Counted from the first letter of the stretch, positions 19,682 to 47,101 are shown. The stretch is DNA of 64,000 nucleotides from Cyanophora paradoxa CCMP329 (GCA_004431415.1 QPMI01000063.1:153210-217209), one strand, 5' to 3'. Translations and numbers: made by a program. The notes: a model not told the origin generated them from the letters alone.

Positions 19682-22600
19682 TCAAGCGCGTCCCGCGGCC
19701 GCGAACAAAAGAGCGAGCGTCGCTGCAAGAAGAGCGAGCACACTCTGGGGCCCGGGGCCAGCAGAACGCGTCGCTGCTGATGAAGGCCAGTACGGCACGC
19801 CAGCGCTGCCGGCGCCGACATTGGCGTTCGTGGTGGTCACAGGGAGCGTCGACATCAGCGAGAACTGTTGAAAGCCACACGCTCATAATCAGAAGGTAAT
19901 TCCGATGGCCAAGCCCGCGAGCTGGGTCATCAGTTTCGCACCGGCGTGAGGTGGTTGCAGGTGGCGGTGTAGGCGCCGGCGGAGGCGGTGGCGGCGGAGC
20001 AGACCTCCCAGGCCTTGCTGGAGGCGTTGAAGAAGACGAGCGAGACCGCCTGGCCCGCCGCGATCGTCACGCCGCTGGCGACGGGGATCGTGAAGCCGAC
20101 CCCCGAGCCGAACTCGCTGCTCAGCTGCTTCGCCCTGCCGGCGTCGTCGAGGCCCGTCGCCGTGACGTCCAGGATCGGCGCGACGAGGCGGTAGCCCGCC
20201 GGCGGCGCGGGGAAGGACGACGCGTTCGAATACACGCGCACAAGGGCCTGTTCGGGTTTCGGAGGTAAGGGGCCCGAACAAAGGAACGGGGATATCAATG
20301 CGCACCTGGAAGTTCTTGCCACCCCAAGCGTTGGTGGGGAAGGTGATCTGTCGGGTAGAATGTATACGTAAGCACACGGAGCGCGAGCTTGAAGCAAAAG
20401 AATCAAGCACCGCCGCCCCCGGAGCGTCGGAAATGCCGCCGACAGTGACCCTAGAGCCGGCCGAGGGGCACGCCTGCTCACGAATCCGTGAGTCGAGGTA
20501 CGATGGTAAAAGACTGGCGAATGCCGCGGACCTTGAAGCCCCAGGGGTCGAACTCGGTGGCGCGCGTCGCCTGCGTGTCGCACGGCGTGTCGGGGCTGCT
20601 CAGCGAGATCTGAGTTCTGAAGGTCAGCCCCCGCACGATTCCGACGGCCCCGAGCCTAATGCGCGGCACCTGGGCGGCCACTTGGGTGAGGGCGGTCTGC
20701 GTCTCGGCGCGGATGGAAGCGGCGGCCGTCGAGGTGGCGGGGATCGCGGAGAGCAGACCCGAGAGGCTCGTCTGCAGGCTCTGCGCGGCACCTCGCGCTC
20801 AGCCGACATTCGGTCTCCAAATTGAGGACACCGATATCGATATCCCTCACCTTCGCATCGATTCCTGCAGTCGTTGCGAGATTCTGCGAATTCTATCATC
20901 AGAGCCCTGGAAACACAATCGATATCAATACCGCGGTAGGAGCTTTCGCACGGGGTTGGCCTTGATGACGTTCATGAGCAGGGTGGCGCCCTGAACCGCC
21001 GTGGCTTCCGAGACCGCGCCAGTCTTGGCGGCGACGGGCGCGACTGACGAGAAGAACGTGACCAGGGCTCCCGCGTTCTGCGGCCGAGGACGGAGCACAA
21101 AAATCGCGCCCTCGCATCAAAACGCGCGCGGTGGCAAGAATTCGAGGAACGTAATTAAATAATATAACGCCGATGCTGCGTACCGCGGTGTTGGTGAGAT
21201 CGACTCCCGACTTGGTTGCCTCCGTCGTCACAGCCTGTAATTTGTGGAATTTAATTGTTTCATCGGCGACCGGCAAGTTACTTCGATTCCCGTATATATA
21301 TAAAAACTCGAGGCAGCCCGCACGGTCATGACGTTGGAGACGACGGCCGAGAATGACGCGAGGAGGCTGTCGATCGCGCCGAGCGCCGCGCGGCGAAGGC
21401 GGCGGAGCTGGACGCCGGTCGCCTTGCTGTAGCGGTCCTTGAGGGTGCCGACGAGCGCCAGGATCTTGTTCATCTTCGTCGCGAAGTCGTCGCCGCTCTG
21501 CGCTCGCCGGACGCGGAAGCAATTCAGCAGACGGGGTGCGATCAAACGGTCGTGTTTTTAAAATTGAAGCAGGTCCAAGGGCGCACGTTCAGGATCGCCG
21601 TGACTTCTTTGTTGACGGCGTCCACTGCCGCCTGTGGAGAGCAGTGGGGTGTAAGGTATATTATCGATGCAAGAAACGCCGCGGCCGGCATGCGCAGCGC
21701 CCACGGACGTTGAAATCGGCGACGACGTTGCCGGTGTTGGGGACGAGCGCCTTGACCTCGACCGCTGCGGCGATCGCGAAGGCCGTCGTGCGCCCCGCGC
21801 CGTCCTCCACCGCCACGCTCAGCTTCGCCGTCCGCGTCGCCCCGCTCTGCGCACGCGCAAGATTTGCGATTCAAGTCAGCTCAGCGGCTCATTGTCACAG
21901 AGCGGATATCCTTCACATCCGGGGCGCGCACGTCGGGGAAGAAGAAGACGATGGTCTCCGTGAGGACGTCGACAGCCAGGGGCGAGCTGGAACCCTCGGA
22001 CGTCACGGTGTACTTGAGGGGCCTCGAGGCCGACTGCCACCCCGAGCACGTCACCTGCAATCGCAAGCACGCGGGTGAGTGCGCGAGTGGACCGCGCCCC
22101 GGCCCGAGTCTGCAGCATCGCGCACCGTAACCTTCTCCACGCCCGCCTGGACCGAGAGAGGGGACACAGTGCAGCTGCCACCGGACGGGGCCGCCCCCTC
22201 GCCTGACCGCAGGTGACTCGATGATGAGAAAATATATAATTAGAAAAGGTCAAATAATTACTCACTGGTGGCCACGGGTGTAGGAGTTGCAACTGTCGTC
22301 CTGCATTACCACGCAAATTAGATATATAGCAAGACTTCGAATCATACAGAAACGGGTGTGCGGTGCTTGCGCGCACTCCGCCATTACCACCGGTGGCGAA
22401 GGGGTCTGCGTGCGCAAAGACATGCAGTGAGCCTCTCACAGTCGGTCACAAGCTTAAGATTAAGGCAATTCCGACTACCGGAGAGGCCGTGGGAGTCGGG
22501 CTCGCCGTTGGCGACGGGCTGGCAGTCGGGCTAGGACTAGGGGTCGGCCTGGCAAGCGAGTCCGGAGTGAAAATCGGAAATGAAACGGAAATGGAACGGT

Positions 22601-24081
22601 CGATTACAGAAAGACACGCACGAAGGAGTCGGGGACGGGCTTGGCGTCGGGACGCAGTTAACTGCGGGCAAGAGGCACGGCCAGCTTATTCTTTTTCAAG
22701 TTACGAAGTGACGAACTATATCCCCCGTCAAGTCGAACCTGAGCCTTGGGCTTTGAAGCCCGGAAGGTTCGCCGTTGAAAAATCGGACTGGAAAACAAGG
22801 AACAGCTTGGCAGAAGAGTCCGTCACAGTGTATGGTTGCAACTGGGGGTTGTTGTCGACCGTAATGTTGCCGCCTCCAAGGCCTGAGAGTGGAGTAAGGC
22901 TGGTCAGCGTGTTCGTTCCCGTCGCCGCATAGATCTATTTTGAGATGTCAGGACACAGAATATTAACGTCAGGCTTTCAAAATCACAAGCACGCGCGTAT
23001 ACAGTATCGAACGGGATGGAGCCACTCTCAACCGGCTCGAACATCAGATCCGAGAAGGACAGCGACACCGTGCTCGAACCCATGCAAGGAGCTTCAGGGA
23101 GTTCGAACAACCTTCGGGCCGGCGAGACATGCGATCAATTAATTAATATATTGCAACGTTCAACGTTACCAGGGGGCATAGATTGACTGCGTACCAGAGG
23201 CCGAAACTCGAATCCGCGTACGGCCCGAAGTTGATGGAGGACGACGCTTGATATTTGGCAGACGTAAAAGCTCTCACGCCGTTGCGAGCGTTGTATCCGT
23301 CGCTGTCGACGATATTCGGATCCAGAGGCGGAGCGCCCGTTGGGGTCGCTGTTGCGGCGGTCATCAATATATATATCAACTCAGCGTTGGTTGATCGACA
23401 CCCGACGACTCACTTCCGGTCTTGGCGACGCTCCAATATCGGGCGCTGAAGCTGATCTCTACTTCCGTCTGGGAGTGGTAGCACCAAACGAAGACCCTCG
23501 ACGAGGCCGACGTGACGATCGAGCCCGTTCGAAGGCTGCTTCCAATAGCCAGCAACGCAGTCGCAGAAGACCCGACGTCCACGATCTGCCGGAAGAATCT
23601 AGCTATTCATACACGGTGCGTACTACAGGCCTATAGCTAGGCCTAGGCCCAGAATGAATACACGTGGCGCACCCGCAGGCCGGTCCCATTGTATATGAAA
23701 TATTGAACATTGTCTGTCCGGAATTGCTGCGCCACGATCTCGAACCTAATGACCTGGTCTTGCGGTGCCGAGATGGTCCTGCGCGTCGCATGTGTGATTA
23801 ACTTTGCGCCGCAGTGCTATCAATGTTCGCGCGTACCAAGCTAGAGACTCGTTGGACACGTAAGAGGTTGTAATAGAATTGCCATTGACTTCGACAACAG
23901 TGTACGGCGTGTAGGTCACGTTCAGGAAGGCGGGCACCGAAGTTGCCGTTAGCGCATCGGTGGTCTTCGTCGTCGCACCGCTCACCCGTGCGCCTTCGCC
24001 GTTCACAATCGGAGCCGCGCAGGCAGCAACGATCAAGCCCAGCAGCAGGGCTTCGCAGCCGCGTTCTCGCCGGAACAACAT
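19682..24081 (-). CDS. Surface protein paralog A: signal peptide, CUB-like domains, P/T/S stalk, REJ-like/helical region, GAIN-GPS-like motif, GPI-type tail
   Basis: Signal MLFRRERGCEALLLGLIVAACAA. CUB-like motif LFLVFQSDFS..PGFKA. Stalk ARPTPSPSPTASPSPTASPTPT. VTCSGWQS..PLKY, LVFFNASSKAWEVC..YTATCNHLTP|F and GVPYWPSSAA..LALLAATLALLFAAAGRA*. Confidence 0.8.
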
Positions 24082-24231
24082 CGCGGCCGAGGTAAAGAAC
24101 TCCCGCAGGGCCGCAGGGCCGGCAGTCGGCGCACGTGGCAGAGCTCGAGTGATCGGTCTCTCCCGCATGCGCAGGCGGCACTGCCGCGGCAGGCCAAAGA
24201 ACAACATCGCGGCCGAGGTAGAGATCTACTA

Positions 24232-24482
24232 CCGTAATGCAGAATATTAAGGTCTGTACTTTATTATGTCGTCCCGAAATTATGTCGCCTAAAACTTGAC
24301 AAAACGACATAATTTGGGGACGTCATGATGGGGCGCGCAATGAAGTATCCCCCCACTTTTACCGCCCCATACAAGCCTGAAAAGTTCATGCCGACATAAT
24401 TTGGGGACGTCATATTTCGCATAGAGAAGGCTCGGGTTTTAAAACGACATAAATTTGCATGACATAATATTGTGTATTACGG
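24232..24482. mobile_element. Tc1/mariner-superfamily (Tc2/pogo-like) MITE, family M1
   Basis: TA on both flanks. TIR ccgtaatgcagaatatta vs ccgtaatacacaatatta. Internal ttatgtcg/cgacataa repeats. Confidence 0.8.
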
Positions 24483-25290
24483 TACTAGCCTAGTACTAGC
24501 TATAGGCTAGTACTACAACTGTACTAGCCTACTAGGCTAGTAGGCTAGAAGTCTAGAACTCCCGCTGCTGACTCAGTGCTGAGTCCCGCAGGGCCGGCGC
24601 TCAGCGGCTGGCAGCCTGGCAGTGGCTGGCAGAGCCTCAGGGCCTGGCACAGTGGCACTAGGATGCCACTAGCCTGGCAGTCCGACGGCGGCTCCGACTC
24701 CAAGCCTCCGACGTCGACTCGCCGACATCGCCGTCGACTCGGCGTCGAGTCGGCGACTCGGCGTCCGCCGTCCGGTCGACCGGACGTCCGACGGTCGAGT
24801 CGCCGTCGAGGCTGATCCCGTCCGATCATGCCATGATGATCATGAGCCTCGGAGGACGGTCGACTCCGGGTCGAGACCGTCGAGCCTCCGATCGCGAGGC
24901 TCGGAGTCGCCGACTCGGCGAGTCGCCGGTACATATATATCGGTTGATGAATCGGGTAGCTAGCTATATATAGTACAGCTGAATTGTACCGGTACTGCCC
25001 TGGTCCGGTAGTACTACGGTACCACAGTACCTACCGGTATACAGCTGAATTGATTTTTTTTGGTGAATTACCTGCAGCTGCATGTATATATATTGCTATA
25101 TATGTGTATATATATGCGCAAATAATGTTTGCACATACGCGCATATATACGCGAAAAGGAGTTCAAGCTGTGAGCCTGTGACTCAGCTGCAGTCGTCCAT
25201 TAATATTGCTTTGCCGATCCCGGATCCGCAACCTCGATTCAGTTTAGACACTTCGCCAGCTTCGAGTCTCCCCTCTAGATCTACCGGTAC

Positions 25291-25820
25291 TAGGGCTGCG
25301 CACAGTCCACCTCAACCCCCACCCGGTCGGTGGGCCCGCTGACTGTTACCCGCCGGTGGCGGTCGGTGGAGGGGGGTACTTGCTGCAGTGCGTGAAAATT
25401 GACAGGAAATTCGCTTAATTCTGCACAGCTTCAAGGCGCTACGCGCCTACTCTGTTCCCAACTGCCGAAAGCAAGTGCTTTGGGGCGAGTTCAAGCCAGT
25501 TGTGGGGAAGCTGGGGGGTTGATGCCCAGGAGGGGGGTACGGGATAACGCGATCGATGGCGTCAGCTCCCTTGGGCTCCGTCGGATTGAAGAGCGCAGGA
25601 GCGCAGGAGAGCAGGAAGATGAACTAAGCAGGACTTTCCTGGCCTGGGTGCACGGAATATGTAACTTTCGCGCGCGAGAATATGAAATGTTCGCATGCCT
25701 ACCCCCCCCAGAATTTTTATTTGTATGGTACCGGGCGTTGTATGGCGGTGGGCCAGACTTTCCACCCGGTCGGTCGGTGGGAGGCCGCCACTGCCACCGG
25801 CCGCCACCGGCCCAGCCCTA
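25291..25820. mobile_element. Non-autonomous hAT-like element
   Basis: TIR tagggctg..cagcccta. Perfect 8-bp target-site duplication accggtac at 25283-25290 and 25821-25828. Subterminal ccggtcggtgg-type repeats. Confidence 0.85.
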
Positions 25821-26851: not shown

Positions 26852-29800
26852 TCAACGCGCGCCGCGAAGTGCGACGAAAGCGGCCACAACTGCCCCCAGA
26901 ACAGCCGCGACTACCGAAGGGACGAGCTGCACACTGGCCGACGGCCAGTACGGTACGTTCGCCGACAAAACCGTGCTGCCGCCGGCAATTAGCGTGAACT
27001 GCGGTGCACACGTCAGCGTTTCGACGACGGCACGCAGCTGGCAGCGCAAAGCGGCGCGCCGGCGTGAGGTGGTCGCATGTGGCGGTGTACTTGGCCGACC
27101 CGGGGGCGCTCGTCGCGGGACTGCACGTGGTCCACTTCTTCCCGGCCTCGTCGTAGAAGGCCAGGGAGACGCTCTGGCCGCCCCCGACCGAGAGCGTCGC
27201 CGGCATCTCGAAGCGGATCTTGTCGGGGAAGTCCTTGATGAAGACGGCCTTGCCGTCGCTGCCGAGCTTTGTCGCGGTGATGTCGTAGACGGCGGAGGCG
27301 ACGCGGTTGTTGGCCGAGGGGCCAGGGAAGTCTCCGGCGTCCGGAGTGGAGACGGAGACCTGGAAATCGCTCGTCGACGCGCTGGCCGGGAACACGAACT
27401 GCGGAATTCGAAGATGCGAATTATAGTTATGATTTCGAAATGGTGGGCGGGAACACAAGCCAGCGCACGGTAGCCGATCCCACGGTGACGGTGAGCGACG
27501 CCGCCGTCCCCGGGCAGACCTTGAAGCGGTACGGGTCGATGTCGGACGCGCGCTCCTGCACGCCGCACTTGGCGTTCGCGTCGCTCAGCGTGATCTGCTG
27601 CGCGTCAGGGGCGAGCTGCGCAGCAGCTTTGCAGCTGTGAGCACGGATACCTGAGTGGAAACGGTGGCGAGGGCGGCCTGGGTCTGGGTGCGGAGCGTGG
27701 CGGCGAGGGTGGACGTGGCCGGCAGGGCCGCGAGCATGCCGGCGAGGCTGGACTGGAGGGCCTGCAATTGGAGCCTTCAGGTGCTGGGGATGGTAATTCG
27801 AAACGCACGCTTCAAACGCACCGCTGCATCCACTCCAGGCGTGCTTGCGAGAGTCTGGAGAAATAGACCTCGAGGTTCAGCTATCGTGCACACGCGAGCG
27901 CGTGCATTTGAATATTGTGCGAGCTCGAGAGCGTACCGGGTTCAGTTGAATGACTTCCATCAAGAGCGTGGTGCCCTTGATAGCATCCTCTTCCTGCGCA
28001 GAACTCAGCGCATTTCTATGTGCTGGTGTAATTCAAAATCTTTATTCGTTTGCAGACGCACCTTGAGAGCTCCTGTCTTGGACGCAATGGGCGCGACGGC
28101 GGCGAAGAAGGTAACAAGAGCGCCGGCGGTCTGCGCCATCGAGTAACGTTCATCGCGGTGGTAAGGGCGGTCGAAAATTTGGCAAGGATGTCCGCCTGCC
28201 GGAGGGAGCGGCGCATGCGCATCTGATGCCGATGCCGAAGTGTCGTGTTTGTGGCCTTGGAGTAGTACGTCTTGAGGGACTCGATGTTCGCCAGAATCTT
28301 CGCCATCTTCTCCGCAAACGGAATATTCGAGTCCTGCGAAATCGATTGATAATTATATAAGAAGAATTCGCTTTTGCTATAGCTAGTTCCGAAATACACT
28401 TACAGCGACGATAGCGGCCATCTGTTTGTCGAACTCCACAAGCATTTGCTGTGTGCACAGATTGGAGTAAATGATTAATATTGCTCTCTCAAATGCACGC
28501 GCATCCGCGCACGTCAAATTGGGCGACGGGGCTGGCGTTGGTATCGACGAGCGGGTTGACTGTGATTTGACCGTCGATGGCATACTGAGTGGAGAGCTTG
28601 TCGCGGCTGGCGTCCGTCACAGTGACCGTGAGCGTCGTCGTGATGGGGCCGTTAGCAGTGGCGCCCTGGCCATGGTACCGGTGAACTTCGATCAGGTGGA
28701 GGCCGAAAGGGCCTGGAGGCAGCTCTAGCTACCGCGGGGAAGAAGAAGTCGAAGGTTTCGTTGAGAGAGTTGCGTGCGAGAGGCGCGTTGAAGCCCTTGG
28801 CGCTGAGCGAAAAGCTGAGGGGCAGAGTGCTCCCAACCCAGCCGGAGCATGAGACCTGCACCAGGTCGGATATCAGTACCAGTCGAGATAGTTATAGTGC
28901 GATTGCAAGGGTAGCCGCAGCGCTTGCTGCGCGCATACGACTGACCGTCACTTTGTCGACAACGGCCTTGACGGTTGCCGGACTCGCGGTGCACGTCCCC
29001 CCGGATGGCGGCGCGCCTGTATTCGAATATTAATATTTAGTTATGGGGCTCGGCGAATGTGCCCTAACTAGCTATAGAGCGGCCGTGCGCACCGGCGGCG
29101 ACAGGAACAGGAGCGGGAGTTGGGACGGGCGGTGCTTCCACGGCGGCCGCCGGCGCCGGCGTCGGGGTGGCCACGGTTGCAGGGAGCTCGACTGCGGTTT
29201 CCGCGGCGGGCGTGGGCGACGGGCTAGCGCTGGGCGTCGCGGAGGGCGACGGGCTCGGGCTCGGGCTCGGAGACGGCGTTGGAGTCGGCGTAGCGCAGGA
29301 AACTGCCGCCCGTGTGAGGCGCGGAAATATATTTGAAGGAAGCTGAAAGGCAGCGAAGGTGCGCACGTGACACGCTCGCCTCGATTCCATCGCCGTTGTT
29401 CCCTCCGTTGTACAGCGCGAACATCGCCACCTCCGTGTGGTTCGGGCTGGTCGTCAAGGTCGGAATGCTGACGGGCATGACGCCGTAGCCTTTCGGAATG
29501 CCAAGGGGAGAAGAAGATTGCGAGCCATCCAGTTGAGTCATCTGCAGCAAAATGTTGATGGCAATTCATCGAGACACTCCGATAGCGCTGGCCTTGCATG
29601 CTTACCGAGAGCCAGTCACACATGTTCGGCGCGCAATTTTCGACAGAGAACTTGGGGAAGGAAATTGCGAGCGAAGGAACGCCGTGGGCAGAGACGCAGC
29701 TGGCAATTGCATCGCTTGCAGCCTTCAGATACCTGTTATATATATGGTTCGATTGCGATTTGCGCATCCGCTTAGTTTCTAAAGATATAGAGAGCCTCAC

Positions 29801-32800
29801 AGCAGCCGAATGGATGTGCTGGAGCTTGTCATGCTGGGAATCGCGATCGACTGCACCGAAGTGCGGACTGGCTGGGTGGCGAGGTTCTGGATGGTGAAGC
29901 CGCTGACGGTTGCCGCGGGCGACAGGAAGGTCGTGTTGACTGCAAAGAGCTTGAATCATACAGCTTGCGTACGGATCCGGACTTTAGCTAGGAGAATTGA
30001 GCCACGTACACGTGCTCTTTTGTTGCGCTCTTATGTTTATGCTGAATGTGTAGTTGCTGCCGGCGGTGTAAAGGAATACAGAGCTCGAATTTGCGGTAAA
30101 CCAGGCCGTCGATCCTGAAGTGCGAGCGGCAAGGAGCACAGGCGGCTGCACGCCGACGTCGAAGACCTGTGCATGCGGTCCCACCCCACACGAACTTTAA
30201 TATTCGGCAACTGCTTTCCTACCGCGCCGCGGCACTCGCACGCACCCATAGTCTTCCCAAACTCGAAGTGAGGAGTCTCTCGGCATTAATCTCGACAAAG
30301 TCATCCTCACCAGGCGCCTTGACCAGCCTGCGTTCAATGTTGTTGAGACGCGTGGCTCACGGACAGCAGTTCGCTATCTTGCACGTGCATGTGCATATAT
30401 ATACATGCACGTGACTCACCAGCCGGCCTTCTCGTTTTCCGGATAGGGGAGATTACCACCCATAGCGAATTCTATTGGTGTTGAAACGTTTCGTGTCGCA
30501 GTGAAGACGCCTTTGTCGCATATGACTGGGATTGACCATGATCGCATTTAGGATACCGTTGAGCATAATTACAATTATATAGTCTGGTTTCAATATCCCG
30601 CTCACCTCGGACATCGGCCACAAAAGCGCCAGCCGGCTCCACTTTGTAAGCATCGACGTCGTAGGACCGTGAGCCCTGATTATTGAACATCGATCGTGTC
30701 AGTCATGGTCGGACGCTTCGGAACAATGCAAAACAATTGCGTGTGCGTGCCTGGTAAAATCCGTCCGAGTGGAATACAACGAGCAGCTCGGCTCCCGGAG
30801 TTGGCATGGCCGCAAGGGGGGGGTAGGTCGTGGTGCCCCATCCAAGTCCCGATCGGGGATAGCTCGGATGGGAGGGCAGCTGCCTGGTAGAAGTTGGCGT
30901 GACCTCAAAAACCTACACGTGCACTCGCGATGTCAGGAATCGTATCGGCGCATTATAATAACCGTCCTCCACGCACAAACATGGCGTCGCAGAAGCAGAG
31001 TTCGCCATCGAGTTCGAGCCAGCGGAGGGAGAGAGTGGAGCGGGCTCCGCATCCAGACTCGGTCAACCTAGACACATTTGGCATCTTTGCGTACCTGAAA
31101 GACCACAATGAGATCAACTCGAATTGGGAAGAACAAATATACATAGCCGAACGAGCTCGCGCGATCGGGAATGTCATCGGTCGCACCAAGCTCCCATGAA
31201 GTCGCCAGAGTAATTTTTGATTCCTATTTCGGCGGGTGCTCCGATGTCTGGGTGTAAAGTACCAGATGTAAAGTTCCGAGTTTCCCGGGTTGAGGTCAGA
31301 GTCGCGGGGCTTGACGGCGTCACTGCGCACAAAATTGAAATCGAGCCATTTTTATATATTTAATTAGCTATAGCCTGGCGTGAGATCTCATGATCAGACG
31401 CACCACTTGTCTTTGCCTTCGAACTGTACTCGGCGGTAAAATATAGCTCCGCGTTGACGTAGTTCCTCGCTTCTAACGCAGCAGAGTGGAAGTCGTCGCC
31501 GGGGTACCAGGCGAAAAGGAACAACCGGCTCGACTCGCTTGTGTACGTGGTCCCCACGACCACCGAGTCCGCGAGGAGCCTCGGCGGATTGACGCCGTAG
31601 TCGATCAACTGTCATCGGTATCGGAAATATGAATATTAACTCATACACGACGTCCATATCTTCAGCGACTTGCATGCGTGTGCACCTTTAGGGAGTTCGC
31701 GGTCGGCTCGGAGGCGTTGAACTTGACCGATGTGAACGTGATTTGAACGCTTTCCGAGTCCGACGGGGCGTAGAAGTTCCTGAGGGGCTCGCGGCGTTAG
31801 CTGTGATGATTAATTTTTACAGAGAGGGCTGATATAAGTGGTTCGGGGACACGCCAGCCGGCCACTTCGTTGAAAGGCCCGCCGTTGTGCACTCCCTTGA
31901 TTGTCTGTGTCGTTGATGTCGCTGCCACCGCCCCCGGAAGAGTCCCGCACACCGCTGCGCGCGTTTTAATTTAGGACGAAAAGAAATCCAGAGCAAAAAC
32001 TGATCGTGAGTGCGTGCTCTCACCCGAAACACTTGCGCGGAAAGCGCCGCCCGGCACCGGGTCCGCCGCATCGGCAGTTCCCTTACTGCCTTGATTCTGG
32101 TGGTTGGAGTGGAAGATGGCGACAAGCTCGGCCCCAGGTGTCGCGGTGAATGCAGGGAAATTTACGGCTGACAATCTGAGCAGCAAATAATGAAATCATA
32201 AAAAGATTTAAGAATTAAAACCTTCGTGTCAAGCAAATTTAAAGTGAGCGCACGTAGGCTTGCCCCAGCCAACCCCAGATTTCGGGTAAGGGGTCTCGTG
32301 TGCGACAAAGCGAACGGAGCTGCTCGTAATCTCGAAAACCTAACGACAACGCGGGTCAAGCGATGCCGAAGGCGCAGATTTTGAAACGGTAGCCGACGGT
32401 CAAGAAGCACTGGTAGATCAAGTACACGCACATACATCACATCGAACCATCCGCTTGCCTGGCCATCGATCTCGAGCCACGTGTGTTTCAAGCTGCAGCT
32501 CGAGTCCTCCGCAGGCAGCGAGACGCGCCTGAAAAACATTTATAGCTTATGTGCGCGATCAAAAACGTTTTGCAATTGAAACTTGTGCACCACGCGTGCA
32601 TCTGGTAGGCGGTGTAGGGTTTCAGCGCGATGTCAACAGGTCCTCCTGGGAACGGGCTGAGAGATAACGAGTTGAATATCCGAGTCTGCCCCGAACTCGA
32701 ACTCAGGGTCGCGGCGTCGGACGCAGTCGCTGCGTGCGCGCGACGCATGCGGCTCATGATCAGCGACACGAAAAGTGGGGGTTTTTAGAGTCCTGATCGC

Positions 32801-35800
32801 GGAGGGTGTGTGCGTACACCCGCTCTTGGCGATGGACTTGTATTCCGCCACGAAATCGTATGTTTTTCCACTCAAAACGTCCCAAATGAAAAGAAGGACT
32901 TTGTTAGAAGCGGACGTATACGTAGTCCCAACGACCGGCGGAGCCGCAAGAAGCCTCGGGGGGGAGACGCCAACGTCGAGCAGCTGCGAATAGGTTTCGC
33001 AGGCTTACACATTCGCTCTTATCGCAGTTGCGCGCCACGCATGCGCAATTGCAAGCATGCGTACCTTCAGAGAGCTGTCCGTGACAGCAGCGCCTCGAAT
33101 CCACTGACCGTTGAGCTTGAACTGGACGACGTCCTGCTCTGTGGGAGCGGTGATGTACCTGCACGAGCAATGTAAGGGTTACATTTGCATGCAAGAAACG
33201 AAGATAGAAAACTTGAGGTGCGAACCAGGCGGTCAAGGCGTCGTACTGACCCATCTCGAAAGTCACAGCCAACGTTTTGGTCGTCGCCGCAGCACTCAGC
33301 GTAGACGGATCGGGCGCCAGTCCCGAAGGGCATTTCGCTGTGTTCGAGAAAAGCATGCAAAGTTTACGATTAGCTGCGACGAAACCGTGCGGCCTACAGC
33401 TGCGAGTCGAAAGGCCTAATTTATAAGGCAGTCAATGTCGCACTGAAAGCGTTTGCGCTGAAGCCTCCACCAGGGGTCTGATTGTCGCCTCCAGTGCTGC
33501 CCTGGTAGCTCGGATTCGAGACAAACACGACAACGAACTCGGCTCCTTCCGCAGCGTCGACGATGGGGAATGCGCTTGTGGTGATGGTGGGCTTGCCCCA
33601 CCCCACGCCAGAGAGCGGATACGCCGCCGAGCCGCCGACGATTTTCGTTGATGTGGCAGTAATCTCGAAGACCTGCATAAGGGCGGGTAAATCGAGCAGT
33701 CGAACACGCGCATATGCGTGCACGTGCACGTGTGTGCTTGCACGTCATGATCACATGCGAATTTGAACGCACATACATCACATCGTACCACCAGCTATCT
33801 TCACCGTCAATCTCAGTCCAGCGCCAACTGAGACTGCAGCCAGAGCTTGAAAGCTGGCTCGATCGTTTGACAGTCCTACGCAAAATACTATCACAACGAG
33901 TTGCAGGCAGTGGTACGTATACCGATGTCGCACCAGGCCTGCAAGTGGCTTGCCGGGTACGGCTTGATCTTGACCTCTTCGTAGATCAAGTCGGGGCGCA
34001 GCTCCACCGAGGCAGAAGCGAACGTTTTGGTGTCCTTCGCTCCAAGAGTAGCATCTGGCGAGGCCGTCGCTGCGCGATTCGGAATGCGCTCGTTAAATGC
34101 ATTGGCGTTCACGTATGATGATGAGCTCGAGCTTACATCCGCTCTTTGCGATTGATTTGTACTCGGCCGTGAAATCGAGCTTTCCCGTATCCCCACGCGC
34201 GGCATAGCCTGCATTGTTGTCGCCGTGCTTGTGCAAGAACACGAAGAGCCTGTTCGAGGCCGTTGTGTATGTTGTCCCGACGACCGGCGGGGCCGCGAGG
34301 AGCCTCGGGGGGGAGACGCCGATGTCGAGAAGCTGCTCGAGCGGATCGGGATTGTGCATGTACAGAGATTGCGCCTGCGGCGGGCTACCTTGATGGCATT
34401 GTCATTGACGGTCGTTCCGTCGATGGCGGTCCCAGTGACCTTGAACTGGATCACGTCCTGCTCAGTGGGAGCGGTGACGTACCTGATGCGAATTTGCATG
34501 AGCGTTAAATATTTGAGGCAAACTTCAATCTAGTGCTCGGATGCTAGTTAGCTTGAGTGATTGCGATTGCGCGCGAGCACCAGCCCATGATCTGCACAGC
34601 AAAACAAAAGTCAAAAAAATGTCTAAAATACACAAACATTACATATATAAAAAGCGGCCGTCTCGCCTCGTCGTTGTAGTTGGCCTCGTAGAAGGCGGTC
34701 ATGGTTTTGGTCGTTGAAGTAGCATTCAGAGTGCTTGGTACGGCCGGAATCTGAGGGCACTTGGCTGCGCGAGTGCCGGCTCATAATCAGGCATATGCCG
34801 ATATGTATAAACGCATGTGCTGTCTCGAAGTCGAACTTGAAACCGCCAATTCAAAAGGAAAGGAAACTCACGGGAAACGAACGCTCGGAAACCGCCTCCG
34901 TTTCCGTCGCTCCCTTGATTAGTATCGTCACTGTGGAAGATGACGAGAAGCTCGGCGCCGGGTTCGGCAGTGAACGGGGGAAACTTTTTCGGATTAGCGA
35001 GAGGATTCTGGTTTCCCCAGCCTGCCCCGTTTCCTGGATAGTATCCTTCAGCTTCTCCAGCAACAAGTCGGGTAGAAGTGCTTGTCATCTCAAACACCTG
35101 AGGGGTGCACACGGTGCTTAGCTATAGCAAAACCTAAAATTTGCAAAAACTTTTAGTTTTTATTGGCCATGGCAGATCAACGTTCACGCACATACATCAC
35201 ATCATACCATCCGTCGGCTTCGGAATCAATCTCGAGCCACTTCAACCAAAGTTTGTTTTCGCAGTCGGAAGGAATGGAAGCGGGAAGCTTGACTTGCCTA
35301 AAATCTCGTGCAGCTCGTGATTAAGAGGGCGAAAGAGTAGCCGGGCTGGCGCGTGAGTTCGCGATCGAGCACGCACCAGGCTTTCATCGTCTTCGCTGCG
35401 TAGGGCTTAATTGCAACCTCGCGACTCGAAGGCGTCGCCGAAATGCTCGCGGTCGCTGTGTGGACCGAGGACGTGAAGGTGCCCGTCACGCTGGATGAAG
35501 AAGTGATGGTCGCCGAGGCAGTCGCTGCGCACGCGCACGCGCCCGACCGCAATGAGCCGTACATGTGCGCACAGGTGCAGGGACGATAGCCCGGGCAGGG
35601 CGGCGCGCACAACCAGCCTTCGCAATCGAATTGTACTCGGCCACGAAACTGGTCGCCGCATCGTACTGCCAGAGAAACACAAAGAGCTTGCTGGAAGCCG
35701 CTGTGTACACCGTGTCGAGGGCCGGGGGGGCGGCGAGTAGTGTCGGGGGAGAGACCCCAACGTCCAGGATCTGAGCGTGATCATGAGATGATTGCAATGC

Positions 35801-36213
35801 GCGCGCGCAAGATTCGAGGGGACGCAAAAACATGATCGAATTCGAACCTTCAAATTATTTGCGATGCCGGTCGCGGATGTGACCTTGAACTGAATGACGT
35901 CCTGGTCCGTGGGTGCGTAGATGTACCTTTGATTCGCAGTTGCAAAGCGCGCACGGCCGAAATCAGTACCGTGCACGTGCAACATTCGCATGCGCGAACA
36001 TCCGCGCGCGCACCAACCGAATACCTCAGCATTGTCCCGCTGGTATTGCACGGTCATCGTCTGCTTCGTCGACGTCGCGGCCAGGCCTCCGGTTGGGGGG
36101 CCGGAGACGAGCGCCCCCGCCGACGCTGCCGCGAAAAGGAGGACGACGAGCGCGGCCCGCAGCCACGCGCACGCCTTCGCGGGCGTCGACGTCGGAGCCA
36201 TTGCCGCACTCAT
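26852..36213 (-). CDS. Surface protein paralog B: signal peptide, about 10 CUB-like domains, P/T/S stalk, REJ-like/helical region, GAIN-GPS-like motif, GPI-type tail
   Basis: Signal WLRAALVVLLFAAASAG. Repeated modules LEID...WYDVMY..GAELLVVFHSD..QG..GF.A and APT.QDVIQFKV..DVGVSPP.LLAAPP..FVAEY.SIAK. Stalk TPTPTPSPSPSPSPS. VSCSGW, LAFYDEAGKKWTTC..YTATCDHLTP|F and NVPYWPSAS..VVAAVLGAVVAAFVALRGAR*. Confidence 0.82.
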
Positions 36214-38582: not shown

Positions 38583-38585
<3 letters not shown>

Positions 38586-40187: not shown

Positions 40188-40302
40188 TACGCCGTACGGT
40201 GGGGCGCGCGGCGATTCTTCTCGGCCCGAGTCGGCGGCGGACCTCCCGGAGTCCCGTGACTCCCGTAGCAGCTGAGCCGTAGGGCCGTACTACGGTAGCG
40301 TA

Positions 40303-40936: not shown

Positions 40937-41046
40937 GGCCCTGGGCCGGCCCCGGCCGGGGGCTCTACCGTAGTACTAGTACTAGTAGTATAGGCTTAGT
41001 AGGCTGTAGCCTGTAGGCTGTAGGTAAAGTTGCAAGCCAGCAGCCA

Positions 41047-41502
41047 TTTTTTTTTTTTTTGAAGTTTGTGGTGTCATTCCTTACATGCACACCACCCCAC
41101 CGTCCGTCACATCCACCGGCACGAGGGCTACTCTACTACTGTGAGCGGGTACGTCGTAGTCCAACTAACTATGTGTCCGGTCTTGCCGAGCCAGTTCTCC
41201 CAGAGCTGATTGTACCCTTCAGACATAATCCTCCGGAGCCTCCAATGGGGCCGCAGCTGAAGATGCGTGTGTCCACAGTCGTGAGTCTTCGGCATGATGT
41301 ACCCAGTTGCACGGTCCTAGTTGCTTGCTTGATGGCTCCTATGCTTGGCCGTGTTGGGACCAGGAGCTCGGTACCCCTTGCGGGGCCCCGAGGTCGGGGT
41401 TTCTCCGGGATTTGAAGCGGGTTCGGTAGTTCCGGTCCGGATTCGAACCGGGGTCCTCTGAGCGGTAAGGCCGACACCTTATCCACTCGACTATGCCTCC
41501 CC
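41047..41502 (-). mobile_element. tRNA-derived SINE, full length
   Basis: Pol III A box TAGTCGAGTGG (41483-41493) and B box GGTTCGAATCC (41439-41449) on the minus strand. Poly(A)14 tail (T-run 41047-41060). Perfect 17-bp TSD ttgcaagccagcagcca (41030-41046 and 41503-41519). Confidence 0.93.
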
Positions 41503-41715
41503 TTGCAAGCCAGCAGCCAGCAAAGTACAAATTAAGTTCCGAAGTTCAACGGTTGCAAAGTTGTAGGCTGCCAGCACTGCGGCAGCAGCTGGCAGCCAGC
41601 AGCCGCAGTAGTCTAGACTCTTGAGTCTGAGTCTAGACTCTGAGATCTAGACGCTCAGAGTCTATAGCTAGATCTAGACGCCCGCGCCGTGGCCGCGCGC
41701 ACGGCGAAGTCGAAG

Positions 41716-44700
41716 ATGGCCATGGGTCGTGAGAGCCCGGCCACACGCGCGCTCCTAGCGCTTGCTATCGCGCTCCTGGCCGCCGCCTTCTCCGGCGTGT
41801 CGGCCGGCGCAACCGGTGCGCGCGCTTGTCCAGCTGTAACCGTACTCGAAGTTGAAGTTGCGCTGCGCAGCCGAGTACCACATCCGCACGCTGTACAATG
41901 ACGGCCTCAACCAGGCGGCCACCGCCAACCCGACGCTCAAGCGGGCGGGGGCGGCCAGCGTGTACTACAAGGACCCCTCGGGCAACGCCCGGATGCTCAT
42001 CCACGGCGGCCAGAAGGGCGGCAGCGGAGACGCGTTCGAGGAGTGGCGGCCACACGATCTTGTAACAGATCCGCAAAATCCCAACAACAAACTGTGGAAC
42101 TATCAAAACGAGGCGGGGGTGACGAAGATGCAGGCTGTCACTGCAGCGCTTCTCGACGACTTCTGGTCCGCAGACATCAGTGCGTTTGACCTTCGATATA
42201 GTAATATAGATCATGACTTTTTTGGAGACATTTATGATGCGGCTGTTTGTTTAGACAGCTAATGTGGGGAAAACGCAGGCGGCGGCCCTATCTCGGTCTG
42301 GTCGTTCACGAAGGCGCCGCTCACTGCGCCGAACGCAACGATCTGGTCGCACTGCGCCTGGGACGAGGTCGTCGGCGAGTCCAGCAGGATCTACTGCGGC
42401 GGCGGCGTCTCGGGCGTCAAGTACGATCTGTTGAATTCGGGTGATGAAACTTCGCCGAAGGTCCCCTACTATCCGCTCTCCTCGGACAAGTTCTACAGCG
42501 TGGACACCAGCCTGGGAACGATCACCGAGCTCGCGCCCATCCCTAACGGTGGCGTCTACGGCGCGTGCATGACTGCCTTCGAAGATGGCGTCTGGGTACA
42601 TTTATCTCACATAATCATACTGCCTACAATCATTTTAGTCAATTTTTCGCACCTCTCAGATTGTGGGGGGGCGTACGGGGTTACCGGATGGAACCTCCGG
42701 CAACAATATCAACATATACCGGTGCGCGCGGCGCTTATCGATTACTGCAAACGTTTCTGAAGATTCATAACGGTACCGAAATTGTGCAGGTACAACATCA
42801 CGAACGGCACGTGGGAGACGATTCTCGATTTTCCCAACCCTCCGGATTACGCTGGGGGAAATGTGGACACGACCACGTTGGGGAATAAAGTTCACAAAAA
42901 TGCCTTCATGAGCTGCGCGCGCGACGGTCCGATATGCCGGAGCTCGAGTTTTCTATGTGTAACTTCAACCTTCGTTAACACACCATGATCACAGGAAAGA
43001 ACTGGTACGTCGTTGGTGGCATCGACTTGGACAGAGCACTCGACTTCGATTTTGCGTCTCCCGCATCAGCGATATTGATGGATCCAAACGCGAGCCCCGC
43101 GGCCGCATCCAGGATGAACGCCCTCTTGTGCGCGAATTCGTTTACGCTGGATTTCGCGTACCATCTTTCATTTCATTTATTAATAGTGCGACGCCGGCCC
43201 GGCATCGCATGCGCAGCGTCATCGACTTGCAAGCTCGCAACATGTCGGAGCACCTCGACGTCTGGCCCAGGCCATCGGAAACGAAGACGTTGACGTCAAG
43301 CACAGCCGCTGCGGCAGCACTAGAACTAACGGAAGTCGATGACACTTACGCGGCGGCCCTTGAAGCGCCGTATGTCGGGATTTGCAACAACAAGCTCTTT
43401 ATGTACAGCCTCGTCTCTTTCAGCGGGTGGTCCGGCATAGAGAACGTCGGAAATATGTCCAAAGAGGGGAGCTGGACCGGCGACGCAACCGTTGCGGTTT
43501 ACGATCCACAGAGTGCGCAGCGGGTGAATTCGAAGTAGGCTATACTATATTCTTTGAGCATATGCGTTTGCGTGAAATATATACCGTTCCCGCTGATTGC
43601 CTTGCATTAATTGCAAAATCCGATCACAGCCGGCAACGTGACCAACCTCAAGACCGCCCCGTCGAGCATGGTGTACCTGGACACCAGCTTCCCGTCCCCC
43701 GGCCAGATGACCTTCGGCACAACGGACACGGCGGTCACCTGGACGGCGGGCACTGACTTCATCAACGACAAGGCGACCTCGCAGGCGGCGCTGACGAGCA
43801 CTGCGCTCACAAGCGCTCATCGGAAGCGCCCCCTCTTGGCGTTCGGGGCGAGTGCGTACGACGGTGACTGCAACATGTGCGCGTTTTGTAACATACTTTT
43901 CTTTGTTTGCGCAAGCCACGCTCACAATGCACCCGGCACGTTGCAGATACGTGGTTGGAGGCTACCGAAGCCGACGAATCGACACCACGCGGACCTGCAC
44001 GGCGAAAACGCTGTCAAGGGTTATACCGGTGTCTAAGGGTGTCGATGGAAACGGCGACCCTATCTTGGAAGACCATACCTTCTCGGCCACTGGCTTTGCA
44101 ACAACCTGCCCGGCCCTGACCAGCCCGGCGGCGTGGGTGCGGTCCGAGGCGTGGGGAATGCGCCGTGCGTGGTCCCCGCTGTAGATCAACAAACTACGAT
44201 TTTCCCCGCGCGCGTGAGCGCTGACGGCTGCGCCTTCGCGATCGTACGGCAGTGTTCACTGGGCCGCTCGCACCGCAGCCGACTCGGCCGCCGACGCCGA
44301 CGCCCAGCCAGACGCCCAGCCCGTCTCCCACGCCGTCGCAAACGCCTTCTCCGTCCCCCACGCCTACGCCGTCTCCGACTCCGGCGCCCGAGCCCGAGCC
44401 CACGCCGACCCCCGTCGTCGAGGTCACGACCCCGGGCCCGGGCCCGGTCGACTCCAGCTCTCCTCCCACTGGAGGCTCGTGCTCGGTCTCCCCGCTCTCC
44501 GCCCAGGCGGCCCTCGACAAGGTCACGGTAAGCCAGTCTTGAGCACTCGTGACTAATTATATAAGCCCGTGCACGACAACGTAAATCGAGCCCTCGTCTC
44601 AAATCAGCCTGCAGGTGACATGCTCTGGCTGGCAGTCCGCGTCTACTCCCCTCGTGTGAGCAGCCTGACAGCTGCATACATATCAGCAAAATTGCTTTGA

Positions 44701-47101
44701 CTTCCGCACACATCAATATCTGATGCAGGTACACTGTCCGCGCCGACATCTTCACCTCGCCGCTCGCGATCGACTCTACCACGCCGACCATCGACTTCTT
44801 CTTCCCTTCTGTGCGTCTTCCTCGATAGATCTAGATAGAATTAATGCACTCAAGGCACGGAAATGAGTTCCGTGTTGCAGAACGACGGCACGACGAAGAC
44901 CGCCAAGCTCACGGTCGTCGTCAAGGACACGAAGGGGCTCACCGCCTCCTTCCCCATCACCACTGCGGTGGAGGTGAAGCCGCTGGTATCCACGAACAAC
45001 TCTGCGGACGCCGTGGCCGCTTTCAAGGTGCTTCCCTTATGAATGCGAAACCGTCCGCTCTCTTGCGTTGGCAATCGCTCACGCGTGTATCGCAGAGTGT
45101 TGTCGACACGTTCAACTCGCAGATGACGGCGATCACCCAGGTCCGCGTTTCAGACACTTTCATGATCAGCCAGTGGTTTCTTCGCCCGCGATCGTACCTT
45201 GACGCCCTGCGGCAGAGCAACGACGCGTTCGAGACTAAGCTGCAGAAGATCCTCGCCCTGGTCGAGACGCTGAAGTCCTACTACAGCAGCGCGTCCGGCG
45301 TGAAGCTGCGCCTGCGGCGCGCCCTGCGGCAGACCACCGGGGCCAGCAGCGACCTCCTCTCGTCCCTCTCCGGGGCCCTTACCAACGTCATGAACGTTCG
45401 CGGATTTTGAGATTCGGGGTCGCGCTCGTCCATCTCGACCGCATTCTGATCATGAACGATGTTTTTCACTGCAGGTCGTCAATCAAGAGGCCACGAAGTC
45501 TGGCGTGAACCTCGCCGATGCCAAGGTGCTCGCGATCGATGTGAACGGCTCCTGTGCGCAACTGCTCTGTCTAAACTTGAGCCCACCGCTCGTCAGACCG
45601 CTGGCTCGCTCGTCACGTTCTTCGCTTCGGTCGCTCCCGTCGCCGCGAAGACCGGCGCCGTCTCGGTTCGTTTAGATCACACTTGGAGTTTTGCAGAAAG
45701 CTGCCAGGAGGCTGACGCAAGCCGAACGCGCGCAGGAAACGTCCGCTATTCAGGGGGCGCAGCTTCTTCTGAAGGTCATGCAGGCTTTCCCGGTTCGCCT
45801 TTGTTATCCGTTTACATTAATTTCAGCTTTCCGCTTGCTTCTTAATTTTCTTCTTCGTTCTGCAGAACCTCACAAACACTCCTGGAATCGACGCCAAGGT
45901 GATCCTTCTTAAGATTTTGCCGTCTCTTGGGGTGCCCCTGTTTGATCGGAGCCTCTCTCTGTGTCGCAGAGCCTCCAGACGAGCCTCTCGGGCCTGCTGT
46001 CTGCCCTTCCCGCGACGTCCACCGCCGCGGCCTCCATCCGCGCCGAGACGCAGACCAAGCTCAACGAGGTCGCCGCCAAGGTCCGCGGGGGGCGGATTTC
46101 GCTGACGCGCATGCTCGCAAGCTTTGATTATAAAAATTAACATGCGCTTCCGCAGATTACGCTGTCGAGCTCGACCACGCCCTGCGGCGAGCAGGTGCGC
46201 ACATCGGACGTCGATCCCGTGAGCTTCAAGGTGCGCCGGCTTGTCTGATCATGATTTGGAGCGATTTGCTTTCTTTGGCTGAGTCTGAATCCGGCGTCGG
46301 TGACCAGGTGTGCCCCGGCACCGCCTCGTCTCGCACCCTCTCCTTCAAGACCTCGACGGCGGCCGACGCCCCCACTGCCACGGTGATGCCTTGCCGCCTC
46401 GTGTACCGAAGGGGGGCCTGCTGACTCGCTGCTTTCTAATGTCGCAGGTCACATTCCCGGCCGACGCGTCGACAACGAACTTCCAGGTCAGCTTCGAATT
46501 CGGCTCTTCGACCACAAATTTCGGAAGGGTCAATTGCGGCTGACCGCCCTCGCAGGTCCTGGTCAACCTGCCCGCGGCCTCGTCCTTCCCCTCTCCGCCG
46601 GCCACCTACTCCCTCATCTCGCCCGTCCTCGACATCACCGCGACGGGCCTCGACGGGAGCGGCAACCCGGTCGCCATCACGAGCTTCCCGGGGAAGATCA
46701 CCTTCAGCGTGCCGGCCAACGCGAACTTCGCCCCGTCCTCGGCCAAGAGCGTCTTCCTGGGCTTCTTCAACACGAAGACGACTCCGACGAAGTGGGACGT
46801 CGGCTGCGGCGAGGCGACGCGCTCCGGCAGCTCCTACACCGCCACCTGCGACCACCTCACCGCCGTGCGCGCGCGTCTCGCGCGCCGTTGAAGTTGAGCG
46901 CTTCTTACATCGAGGCTGACTAAATTGCACCGTTTTGGCGCCCCGCAGTTCGGGCTCATGGGCTACTCCCCGGTCCTCGGCGTCAACTCCGTCCCGTACT
47001 GGCCGGGCAACTCTGCCCTCGCCCAGCACGGCCCCTCGGCGCTGCTGAGCCTCCTCTTCGCTGCCGCCGTCGCGGCGTTCGCAGCCCGGCGGATGTGGTA
47101 G
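41716..47101 (+). CDS. Surface protein paralog C: signal peptide, kelch beta-propeller, P/T/S stalk, REJ-like/helical region, GAIN-GPS-like motif, GPI-type tail
   Basis: Signal ALLALAIALLAAAFSGVSA. Kelch GG motifs MLIHGG, IYCGGG, WYVVGG and YVVGGY. Stalk PTPTPSQTPSPSPTP. VTCSGWQS, FLGFFNTKTTPTKWDVGC..YTATCDHLTA|F and SVPYWPGNSA..ALLSLLFAAAVAAFAARRMW*. Confidence 0.82.

Follow-up and report, generated by a model that had tools for sequence, protein, structure and literature searches.

Three intron-rich paralogues, referred to here as genes A, B and C, are located in a 64-kb window of contig tig00000246 of the glaucophyte Cyanophora paradoxa, a freshwater alga (Table 1). They probably encode type I surface proteins of the secretory pathway and belong to a lineage-restricted, expanded family in which an REJ and a GAIN domain are followed by a short anchor. 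Each of the three opens with a sequence resembling a signal peptide, followed by a variable head. A P/T-rich stalk, probably glycosylated, then leads into a single beta domain of the REJ type, a complete GAIN domain, a linker and the anchor. As described in the initial annotation, the C-terminal cassette is common to all three genes in one collinear order. This was evident from tblastx comparisons and from the positions of the motifs VTCSGW or VSCSGW, LVTFF..SVAPVAAKTGAVS, YTATC(D/N)HLT and VPYWP, which lie on the expected strands in A, B and C. The common intron reported just after HLT-x was found as a phase-0 intron at that junction in three of three genes. The cassettes share only 44-54% identity among A, B and C, with all motifs kept. 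A survey of the C. paradoxa genome, which had been suggested as a way to find further N-terminal variants, yielded at least 18 family models on at least 15 contigs, with several head types. An exhaustive profile search recovered the cassette from no other organism, and no additional pieces of the family were found elsewhere in the 64-kb window.

The exon chains derived here agree with the public gene models at 100% across every shared block. The chain of gene A is 100% identical to model P0024 in blocks of 103 and 360 residues, that of gene B matches P0004 in three blocks (42, 36 and 143 residues), and that of gene C shares identical blocks of 224, 131 and 479/480 residues with P0021. The public annotation breaks gene B into g21519 (P0004), g21520 and g21521 (P0025), and P0004 skips the post-HLT intron, so that HLT and the anchor are lost. 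P0021 leaves out the stalk and two head exon groups of gene C. Third codon positions of the exons are 86% G+C, which indicates that these exons are coding. The RNA runs gave no support for the locus; the splice pattern thus rests on conservation among paralogues, codon bias and the public gene models. Within GAIN subdomain A of gene A, a 60-nt in-frame intron (20669-20610) was called by homology, and the 20 residues that it would encode are absent from other family members. The last 113 amino acids of the gene B GAIN domain lie in a single exon (27398-27060). Gene B keeps its anchor only via a GC-AG intron.

Table 1. Positions of genes A, B and C and of their parts, counted from the first nucleotide of the 64-kb window.
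Feature	Position	Strand	Details
Gene A	19682-24081	-	about 23 exons, about 870 aa; tig00000246_g21518 covers the 3' part only; signal peptide, one T1+T2 head module, P/T stalk, REJ-like domain, GAIN, short anchor
A, head	22739-23950	-	one T1 and one T2 unit; one match per unit profile
A, P/T/S-rich stalk	22266-22661	-	4 small exons; from translations
A, REJ-like beta domain	21705-22202	-	SGGSC...VTCSGW...FFFPD...; Pfam REJ, model strands 37-95
A, GAIN subdomain A	20532-21624	-	helical, with LVTFFSSVAPVAAKTGAVS; seven helices in paralogue model
A, GAIN subdomain B	19942-20473	-	beta sandwich ending YTATCNHLTP; HLT at 19953-19945
A, phase-0 intron	19865-19941	-	GT..AG, 77 nt; one residue past the predicted cleavage site
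A, last exon	19682-19864	-	FSLMST strand, linker, VPYWP 19798-19784, hydrophobic run 19744-19691, RA, stop
Gene B	26852-36213	-	about 49 exons, about 1790 aa; approximate model; signal peptide, five T1+T2 modules, stalk, REJ-like domain, GAIN, short anchor
B, head	29367-36080	-	five tandem T1+T2 modules, period about 260 aa; five matches per unit profile
B, P/T/S/A-rich stalk	29093-29302	-	from translations
B, REJ-like beta domain	28513-29016	-	SGGTC...VSCSGW...FFFPA...; tblastx collinearity with A and C, family alignment
B, GAIN subdomains A and B	27060-28421	-	HLT at 27071-27063; motifs, tblastx
B, intron after HLT-P	26999-27059	-	61 nt; GC donor GCGCGC vs GTGCG in A and C
B, last exon	26852-26998	-	FTLIAGG, VPYWP 26956-26942, hydrophobic run 26917-26867, RGAR, stop
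Gene C	41716-47101	+	tig00000246_g21522, P0021; about 27 exons, about 1145 aa; signal peptide, head of another kind, stalk, REJ-like domain, GAIN, short anchor
C, head	41871-44164	+	repeated blade-like 'hhhhGG ... W' motifs, seen by eye; unrelated to A/B heads
C, P/T-rich stalk	44253-44464	+	from translations
C, REJ-like beta domain	44465-45027	+	TGGSC...VTCSGW...FFFPS...; tblastx collinearity
C, GAIN	45096-46864	+	subdomain A 45096-46230, subdomain B 46308-46864, HLT 46853-46861
C, phase-0 intron after HLT-A	46865-46948	+	GT..AG, 84 nt; junction also in P0021 and P0001
C, last exon	46949-47101	+	FGLMGY, VPYWP 46991-47005, hydrophobic run 47036-47086, RRMW, stop

The identity of the REJ and GAIN/GPS domains was assessed by profile and structure comparison. 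Pfam REJ (PF02010, cut-off 25 bits) matched P0012 (38.9 bits), P0023 (34.1), P0013 (28.0) and gene A's model P0024 (27.4), all above the cut-off. Of the 452 profile positions, the match is confined to about 311-443; in P0024, positions 311-442 align to residues 7-135. For Pfam GPS (PF01825, gathering score 22.5 bits), P0010 scored above the threshold with 24.2 bits and P0012 reached 20.0 bits, and no match at the cut-off was obtained for the window's own genes (window exons and gene C's model). The fold was modeled with AlphaFold for residues 30-538 of P0002, a paralogue on another contig that is 93% identical to gene A's model and has the same last-exon layout as gene A. This model, whose input alignment was shallow (17 rows), has a mean pLDDT of 74, with values of 80-90 in its helical and beta parts. 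It comprises seven helices (105-294) and then the strands of a beta sandwich (313-459), and H450-L451-T452 occupies the turn linking the two final strands (443-448 and 454-459). The best seven Foldseek matches are all GAIN structures (E 5e-8 to 2.5e-5), with BAI3 (5e-8) first, then BAI2, latrophilin-1 and -3, CELSR1 and GPR110. An all-against-all structural search with VIA likewise placed the BAI3 GAIN domain on top (Z 11.8, rmsd 3.6, 149 residues); CD97, CELSR1 and GPR126 came next (Z 11.3-11.6). When the family profile was compared with PDB sequences, seven of 10 matches were GPS regions of adhesion GPCRs (best E 0.02), aligned on W..C..C-x-HLT-x-F-x-L. Together, the Pfam matches in family members, the paralogue model and the PDB sequence matches support the reading in the initial annotation that a true GAIN/GPS module follows the REJ-like domain.

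The GPS motif of the family is C-x-H-L-T-x-F-x-L-M, and the exon behind the HLT-P or HLT-A intron begins with F-x-L-M/I in A, B and C. No family row that reaches the site has lost H, L or T, and rows without HLT end short there; outside of these residues family members have drifted to 36-50% identity. In latrophilin-1 the GPS turn contains a conserved Trp and the disulfide pairs C834-C820 and C832-C801 (PMC3321182). The Trp and a Cys pair equivalent to C820-C834 are conserved in all or nearly all members of the Cyanophora family; in A and C the two Cys residues have a spacing of 14-15 residues. For the second pair the family has no counterpart, the position of C832 being taken by Ala.

Based on this arrangement, the GAIN domain would cut itself between L and T, and the large outer fragment would be held non-covalently on a stub of about 50 residues comprising the last strand, the linker and the anchor. 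A pull on the head would then tear the outer fragment off its stub; we infer such mechanical shedding, and a non-signalling role, for the three proteins. Alternatively, the GAIN domain could serve as an uncut rigid stalk in ordinary type I adhesins, with HLT kept for folding of the last hairpin. This would agree with the Pro that most family members, A and B among them, have as the second residue past the site, with the missing GPS disulfide pair and with the finding that BAI3, which has a like cleavage-site motif, was not cleaved in either HEK293 or insect cells (PMC3321182). It is rendered rather doubtful by the retention of H, L and T in all rows covering the site despite the drift elsewhere, by a post-site strand that fits the T-x-F-A-V-L-M consensus (PMC12716839), and by latrophilin, in which mutating H, L or T abolishes cleavage and leaves folding unharmed (PMC3321182).

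Self-cleavage in the GAIN domain would leave very little protein behind the site. In A, B and C only 44-62 residues follow HLT; P0012 has 25, and an exon appears to be missing from its model. The distance from the Thr of HLT to the hydrophobic run is 29-42 residues in A, B and C, which places the GAIN domain directly before the membrane segment, and a linker of 20-30 residues with the conserved VPYWP connects the last strand to the anchor. Each of the three genes ends with a hydrophobic run of 17-18 residues plus 2-4 residues, in accordance with the single terminal hydrophobic tail and almost absent cytoplasmic part recognized in the initial annotation. Its statement that neither a 7TM nor an 11TM domain follows the GAIN domain holds as well: the stop after the short tail is conserved in complete family models, and downstream of the stops neither coding signal on the same strand nor multi-pass exons were detected. 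A PLAT/LH2 domain or 11 transmembrane segments were not found behind the GPS. Given this and the end of the proteins 44-62 residues past HLT, they are not polycystin-1 orthologues. Hydrophobic runs of 14-20 residues, as they occur here, are short for a plasma-membrane helix.

In nearly every member the hydrophobic run is followed by a basic residue (RA, RGAR, RRMW, RQH, KRTW, KY, NRY, RFR, RLRQ). A basic residue at this position is needed by a stop-transfer anchor, but is not known to be needed by a GPI signal. Furthermore, a full transmembrane helix of at least 23 residues is present in family member P0009, where a tail of 58 residues follows it. Due to these two features, a stub transmembrane helix is the somewhat preferred prediction from the sequences for the anchor. 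If the tail were a GPI signal instead, as considered in the initial annotation, the cleaved head would sit on a lipid-anchored peptide from which force or a phospholipase could release it. The small residues after VPYWP (GNS, SSA, SAS), a polar spacer of 6-11 and then 16-18 hydrophobic residues near the end would suit such a signal, but the conserved basic residue and the tail of P0009 argue against it, and a lipid anchor is considered somewhat less likely.

By analogy with the tethered agonists of adhesion GPCRs and polycystin-1, the stub might act in trans once the head has been pulled off, with its exposed T-x-F-x-L-M strand activating a separate multi-pass partner. Conservation extends to the post-site strand and to the membrane-near VPYWP, which has no obvious structural role, and single-pass GAIN isoforms of one adhesion GPCR have been described (bioRxiv 10.1101/2023.01.11.521585). 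However, the position of the strand in the beta sandwich alone explains its conservation and no partner gene was found in the window, which makes a function in trans improbable. It is highly unlikely that the genes are silent or decaying with frames kept through recent duplication only, because, despite the lack of RNA for A, B and C, the GC donor at the last intron of gene B and the fragmentary public gene models, frames are open across the about 23, 49 and 27 exons with G+C-rich third positions, the diverged cassettes retain every motif and the family is spread over many contigs.

The heads of A and B consist of two types of beta-rich units, T1 and T2, of about 100-150 amino acids each. Unit profiles detected two units in A, 10 in B (five two-unit modules) and none in C. 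The numbers given in the initial annotation, few CUB-like units in A and about 10 in B, were therefore correct, but the CUB label was not supported, as Pfam CUB matched neither the A/B exons nor the contiguous unit in gene model P0025; the head of A gave no match to any Pfam family. The best PDB match of the T2 profile was to cubilin CUB domains and was non-significant (E 0.22), and for the T1 unit neither a Pfam nor a PDB match was found. The designation of the gene C head as a kelch propeller was not supported either, since Pfam, PDB sequence and database-homologue searches were all empty; a single-sequence fold of this head had a pLDDT of 34 and was uninformative. A and B share a common head type, yet they are separated in the cassette tree by a branch with 99/97 support, and other head types are present on both sides of this branch. 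This mismatch between head types and cassette tree shows that heads were exchanged, in line with the earlier proposal that they are swappable.

The design is not without precedent, and the closest one is sea-urchin REJ1. SpREJ1 and SpREJ2, members of the PKD1 family, possess REJ and GPS followed by one or two transmembrane segments rather than the 11-TM block (PMC1934368). They resemble the Cyanophora proteins in the combination of binding head, REJ, GPS and few transmembrane segments, and as surface proteins of a motile cell. In contrast, they are animal and not glaucophyte proteins, carry C-type lectin and EGF domains as heads and have an REJ module of about 545 residues, whereas the Cyanophora proteins match the REJ profile only in its final third, have tails of 2-4 residues past the anchor and belong to an expanded family with exchanged heads. 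Polycystin-1 (PKD1) and PKDREJ likewise carry an HL|T-x-F site and an REJ followed by a GAIN/GPS that immediately precedes the membrane, but the Cyanophora proteins have a much smaller ectodomain and lack PLAT, the 11 transmembrane segments and the channel-like part. The union of GAIN and 7TM is thought to date to stem holozoans (PMC12716839). Adhesion GPCRs (latrophilin, BAI, CELSR, CD97, GPR126) provide the best structural matches and share the helical and beta GAIN parts, H-L-T in the last beta-turn, a post-site strand like T-x-F-A-V-L-M and variable heads on a constant GAIN. They differ from the Cyanophora proteins, which have no 7TM, lack one GPS disulfide pair and harbor an REJ-type domain in place of HormR. 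In SEA-domain mucins such as MUC1, a self-cut module lies beside a single membrane anchor and the glycosylated ectodomain is held non-covalently. If cleavage occurs, the Cyanophora proteins would be similar to these mucins and to the bacterial SEAL domains (PMC10556640) in that force is needed to part the two pieces; with an unrelated fold and another context of cleavage chemistry, this is analogy and not homology.

In this family a stalk of the self-cutting type with exchangeable heads ends in a tiny anchor, and not in a receptor or channel. If the proposed mechanism is true, the proteins would be force-limited adhesins or shed baits, or the strand of the stub would become exposed to a membrane partner, and the family would not signal via its own chain.

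The C-terminal cassette shared by the three paralogous genes A, B and C consists of a P/T stalk, a REJ-like domain, a GAIN/GPS module with the predicted cleavage site HLT, a linker containing VPYWP and a short anchor. Six-frame translation recovered every motif quoted in the initial annotation at its place and on its strand, and tblastx of the three gene spans yielded a single collinear series of conserved blocks from the S/TGGxC...V(T/S)CSGW region to the end. The proposed GAIN/GPS identity was supported by four agreeing lines: Pfam, a PDB-sequence profile, an AlphaFold model and structural searches. Pfam REJ exceeded its cut-off in four family members, including P0024, the public model covering part of gene A (27.4 bits versus 25). 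Pfam GPS was detected in the family member P0010 (24.2 bits versus a cut-off of 22.5), fell just short in P0012 and stayed below the cut-off in A, B and C themselves; individual cassette and head exons gave nothing useful in Pfam because they are too short. When a 17-row family profile was compared with all PDB sequences, seven of the ten best matches were GPS regions of adhesion GPCRs, each of them weak (best E-value 0.02), and these aligned on W..C...C-x-H-L-T-x-F-x-L. The sole PDB match of a profile of the last GAIN exon was kelch-like (E-value 3.2) and was dismissed as chance.

The AlphaFold model covers residues 30-538 of P0002, a paralogue 93% identical to the model of gene A, with A, B and C present as rows in the alignment. 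Its mean pLDDT is 74, reaching 80-90 in the parts that matter, and it comprises a small beta domain followed by seven helices and a beta sandwich; H450-L451-T452 forms the turn joining the last two strands. The best seven Foldseek matches in the PDB are all GAIN structures (BAI3, 5e-8). A structural search independent of Foldseek also placed the GAIN domain of BAI3 at the top (Z 11.8, rmsd 3.6 over 149 residues), followed by CD97, CELSR1 and GPR126 at Z 11.3-11.6; ZU5 and FIIND domains were matched as well (Z 9.3-10.7). Since all four lines agree, a GAIN fold is predicted upstream of HLT, and the possible lack of one, which the initial annotation had raised against its own reading, can be set aside. 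Look-alikes in the ESM Atlas were weak, with one cluster containing 12% GPS (score 0.87), and the search with a head exon returned nothing. Three departures from the GAIN canon were seen: A, B and C themselves do not reach the Pfam GPS cut-off, the residue following Thr is Pro in A, B and most other members, and of the two cysteine pairs that hold the GPS turn in latrophilin the family retains only one (PMC3321182). In addition, the axonemal doublet-microtubule structures 8glv_AE, 9fqr_Hn and 9y6s scored level with true GAIN domains (Z 9.2-11.7), their matches spanning residues 218-470 of model m0831e6d2398b, which correspond to the end of the helical part and the beta sandwich.

Coordinates of the paralogous genes and of features at the locus
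Feature	Position	Strand	Remark
Gene A	19682-24081	-	
VPYWP, gene A	19784-19798		
In-frame, stop-free intron, gene A	20610-20669	-	60 nt; coding in P0024 (VPRIRLGAVGIVRGLTFRTQ)
Gene B	26852-36213	-	
VPYWP, gene B	26942-26956		
Last intron, gene B	26999-27059	-	GC donor GCGCGC; GTGCG in A and C
Gene C	41716-47101	+	
VPYWP, gene C	46991-47005		
Second set of letters	43655-47257		Clustered base differences in contigs of 2012 DNA runs
Fragmentary public annotation	19682-47101		
Low G+C across cluster	18000-50000		49-60%, versus 72-77% in flanks

The common intron described after HLT-x is indeed shared, lying in phase 0 one codon past the Thr in A, B and C. The last exon of all three opens with F-x-L-M/I, which is close to the tethered-agonist consensus T-x-F-A-V-L-M (PMC12716839). 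The public model P0004, which represents part of gene B, uses another splice and stops before HLT; it lacks HLT and the anchor because it avoids the GC-donor intron of this gene. This donor reflects either a working GC-AG intron or a first step of decay, and gene B may be poorly spliced or starting to decay. In complete members 44-62 residues follow the Thr, comprising a strand, the VPYWP-containing linker, a hydrophobic run of 14-20 residues and 2-4 residues at the very end. The stop codon position is common to the family models with a complete end, no codon-bias signal follows the genes on the same strand, and no additional family pieces occur in the 64-kb window; with these three observations, nothing in the sequence suggests hidden multi-pass exons. 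VPYWP, placed between the final strand of GAIN and the anchor, is kept in most members despite variation in the surrounding linker and could serve as a partner, processing or attachment site. Judged by what is generally known of stop-transfer anchors and GPI signals, the anchor is probably a stub transmembrane segment. The alternative of a GPI anchor, to which we assign a somewhat less than even likelihood, fits the layout of the tail, in which small residues past VPYWP give way to a polar spacer and then to a short hydrophobic end. Against GPI, a basic residue directly follows the hydrophobic run in almost every member, and in the family member P0009 the helix is long and the tail extends to 58 residues.

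The heads of A and B are built from two types of units. Profiles of these units (T1 and T2) matched once each in A and, strictly alternating, five times each in B, counts that are partly circular because the profiles were built from the same copies; this agrees with the few versus about 10 units originally reported. Neither profile matched gene C or other family models. The label CUB for these units was not upheld: Pfam gave no match, even on the contiguous unit of P0025 (part of gene B), the best PDB match of T2 was a cubilin CUB domain at an E-value of 0.22, and phmmer of a whole T1 unit against PDB found nothing. The kelch label for the gene C head fared no better, as this head has no Pfam match, no PDB sequence match and no database relative (a word-based homologue search and phmmer against PDB found nothing). 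It carries blade-like motifs, and its single-sequence fold gave no usable model (pLDDT 34). The idea of head swapping was supported by a maximum-likelihood tree of the cassette, in which a 99/97 branch separates gene B and P0013 from A and C. The head of P0013 differs from that of gene B. Because the A/B-type head and other heads each occur on both sides of this branch, heads have been replaced at least twice, a count derived from just four proteins whose heads are known and from gene models that vary in quality.

Spliced chains of A, B and C were assembled with a small dynamic program based on codon bias (third positions of exons are 86% G+C, with 3% A) and on the splice consensus of the locus, GT[GT][AC]G / GCAG, with introns of 55-90 nt. 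They comprise about 23 exons (about 870 aa) in A, about 49 exons (about 1790 aa) in B and about 27 exons (about 1145 aa) in C. They match the public gene models exactly in all common blocks, but are only approximate in the heads and in the helical part of B. They were used to derive coordinates, count repeats and build the local tree, whereas searches, folds and family comparisons started from single exons, public gene models or database proteins. The public models of A, B and C on contig tig00000246 are broken into pieces, which is a lesson for annotation: g21518 (P0024) lacks the head of A, gene B is divided among g21519 (P0004), g21520 and g21521 (P0025), and g21522 (P0021) lacks the stalk and the VTCSGW exon of gene C as well as two groups of its head exons. 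The residues that P0024 gains by reading through the in-frame intron of gene A have no counterpart at that position in any other family member. The open frames that separate or flank the three genes showed neither Pfam matches nor a codon-bias signal. The low G+C content of the approximately 30-kb cluster probably stems from dense, short, AT-richer introns and spacers rather than from foreign DNA, since the exons keep their high G+C content at third positions.

No RNA support for the locus was found in 17 runs labelled 'RNA?', and two that were examined in detail yielded no contig; this does not show that A, B and C are silent. Two runs from 2012 that carry the locus were rejected as RNA evidence, because their contigs continue across introns, i.e. 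the runs are DNA. Three apparent joints near introns in these runs were likewise rejected as splicing and are read as divergence between near-identical copies. The protein P0001, from a different contig, shares 96% identity with gene C. The locus exists in a second, nearly identical copy or haplotype, and some family models may be alternative haplotypes.

When 1.84 billion representative proteins were searched exhaustively with HMMER, the A1 profile, built from the last GAIN exon, gave 20 matches in total. Twelve had E-values below 1e-10, all of them EukProt gene models of Cyanophora paradoxa except P0011, a bacterial repeat protein (4.9e-13); P0013 (3.7e-7) and P0018 (7.6e-5) bring the matches from this species to 13. 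Apart from one S-layer protein of bacteria and one short hypothetical protein, the other weaker matches were bacterial repeat proteins. Together with close paralogues from a word search the family comprises at least 18 models, spread over at least 15 contigs, and at the sensitivity of the A1 search no members were found outside C. paradoxa. P0019, a bacterial protein of 455 aa from a JGI/IMG metagenome with three S-layer homology domains, matched the GAIN-B exon profile (E-value 2.3e-4), and the matched part closes with the GPS-like pattern ...W..IGG...IIFTVTHLSKYALM; judged from this sequence, the protein may represent a relative of the GAIN-B hairpin in bacteria.

We found no paper mentioning these genes. 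Outside animals, GAIN domains are known from Dictyostelium and Tetrahymena, always directly before a membrane segment (PMC3321182), and the union of GAIN with 7TM domains is regarded as an invention of holozoans (PMC12716839). The sea-urchin proteins REJ1 and REJ2 combine REJ and GPS with just one or two transmembrane segments (PMC1934368). The Cyanophora design is therefore a variation on a known kind rather than a new one, and the exchange of heads on a constant stalk also resembles animal adhesion receptors. What is new here is the host lineage, the family size, the almost complete lack of sequence behind the anchor and the exchange of orphan heads.

To our knowledge, work on GAIN has dealt almost exclusively with its role as the switch in animal adhesion GPCRs and polycystin-1. 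The REJ-GAIN pair now extends to glaucophytes, and an early-branching alga harbors a whole family with the GAIN fold and cleavage triad, yet with nothing behind the membrane anchor. Cleavage of the GAIN module followed by force-driven shedding is a reasonable reading, for which the chances appear evenly balanced. The further proposal that GAIN alone acts as a force-gated release joint, which cuts itself and holds exchangeable heads on a lipid-anchored or nearly tail-less stub of about 50 residues, is speculative and rather unlikely. If it were true, controlled shedding, and not receptor activation, would be the older task of GAIN, predating its joining to 7TM and 11TM proteins in other lineages. 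The family offers a natural minimal system for the role of GAIN cleavage without a receptor and for the force held by the joint.
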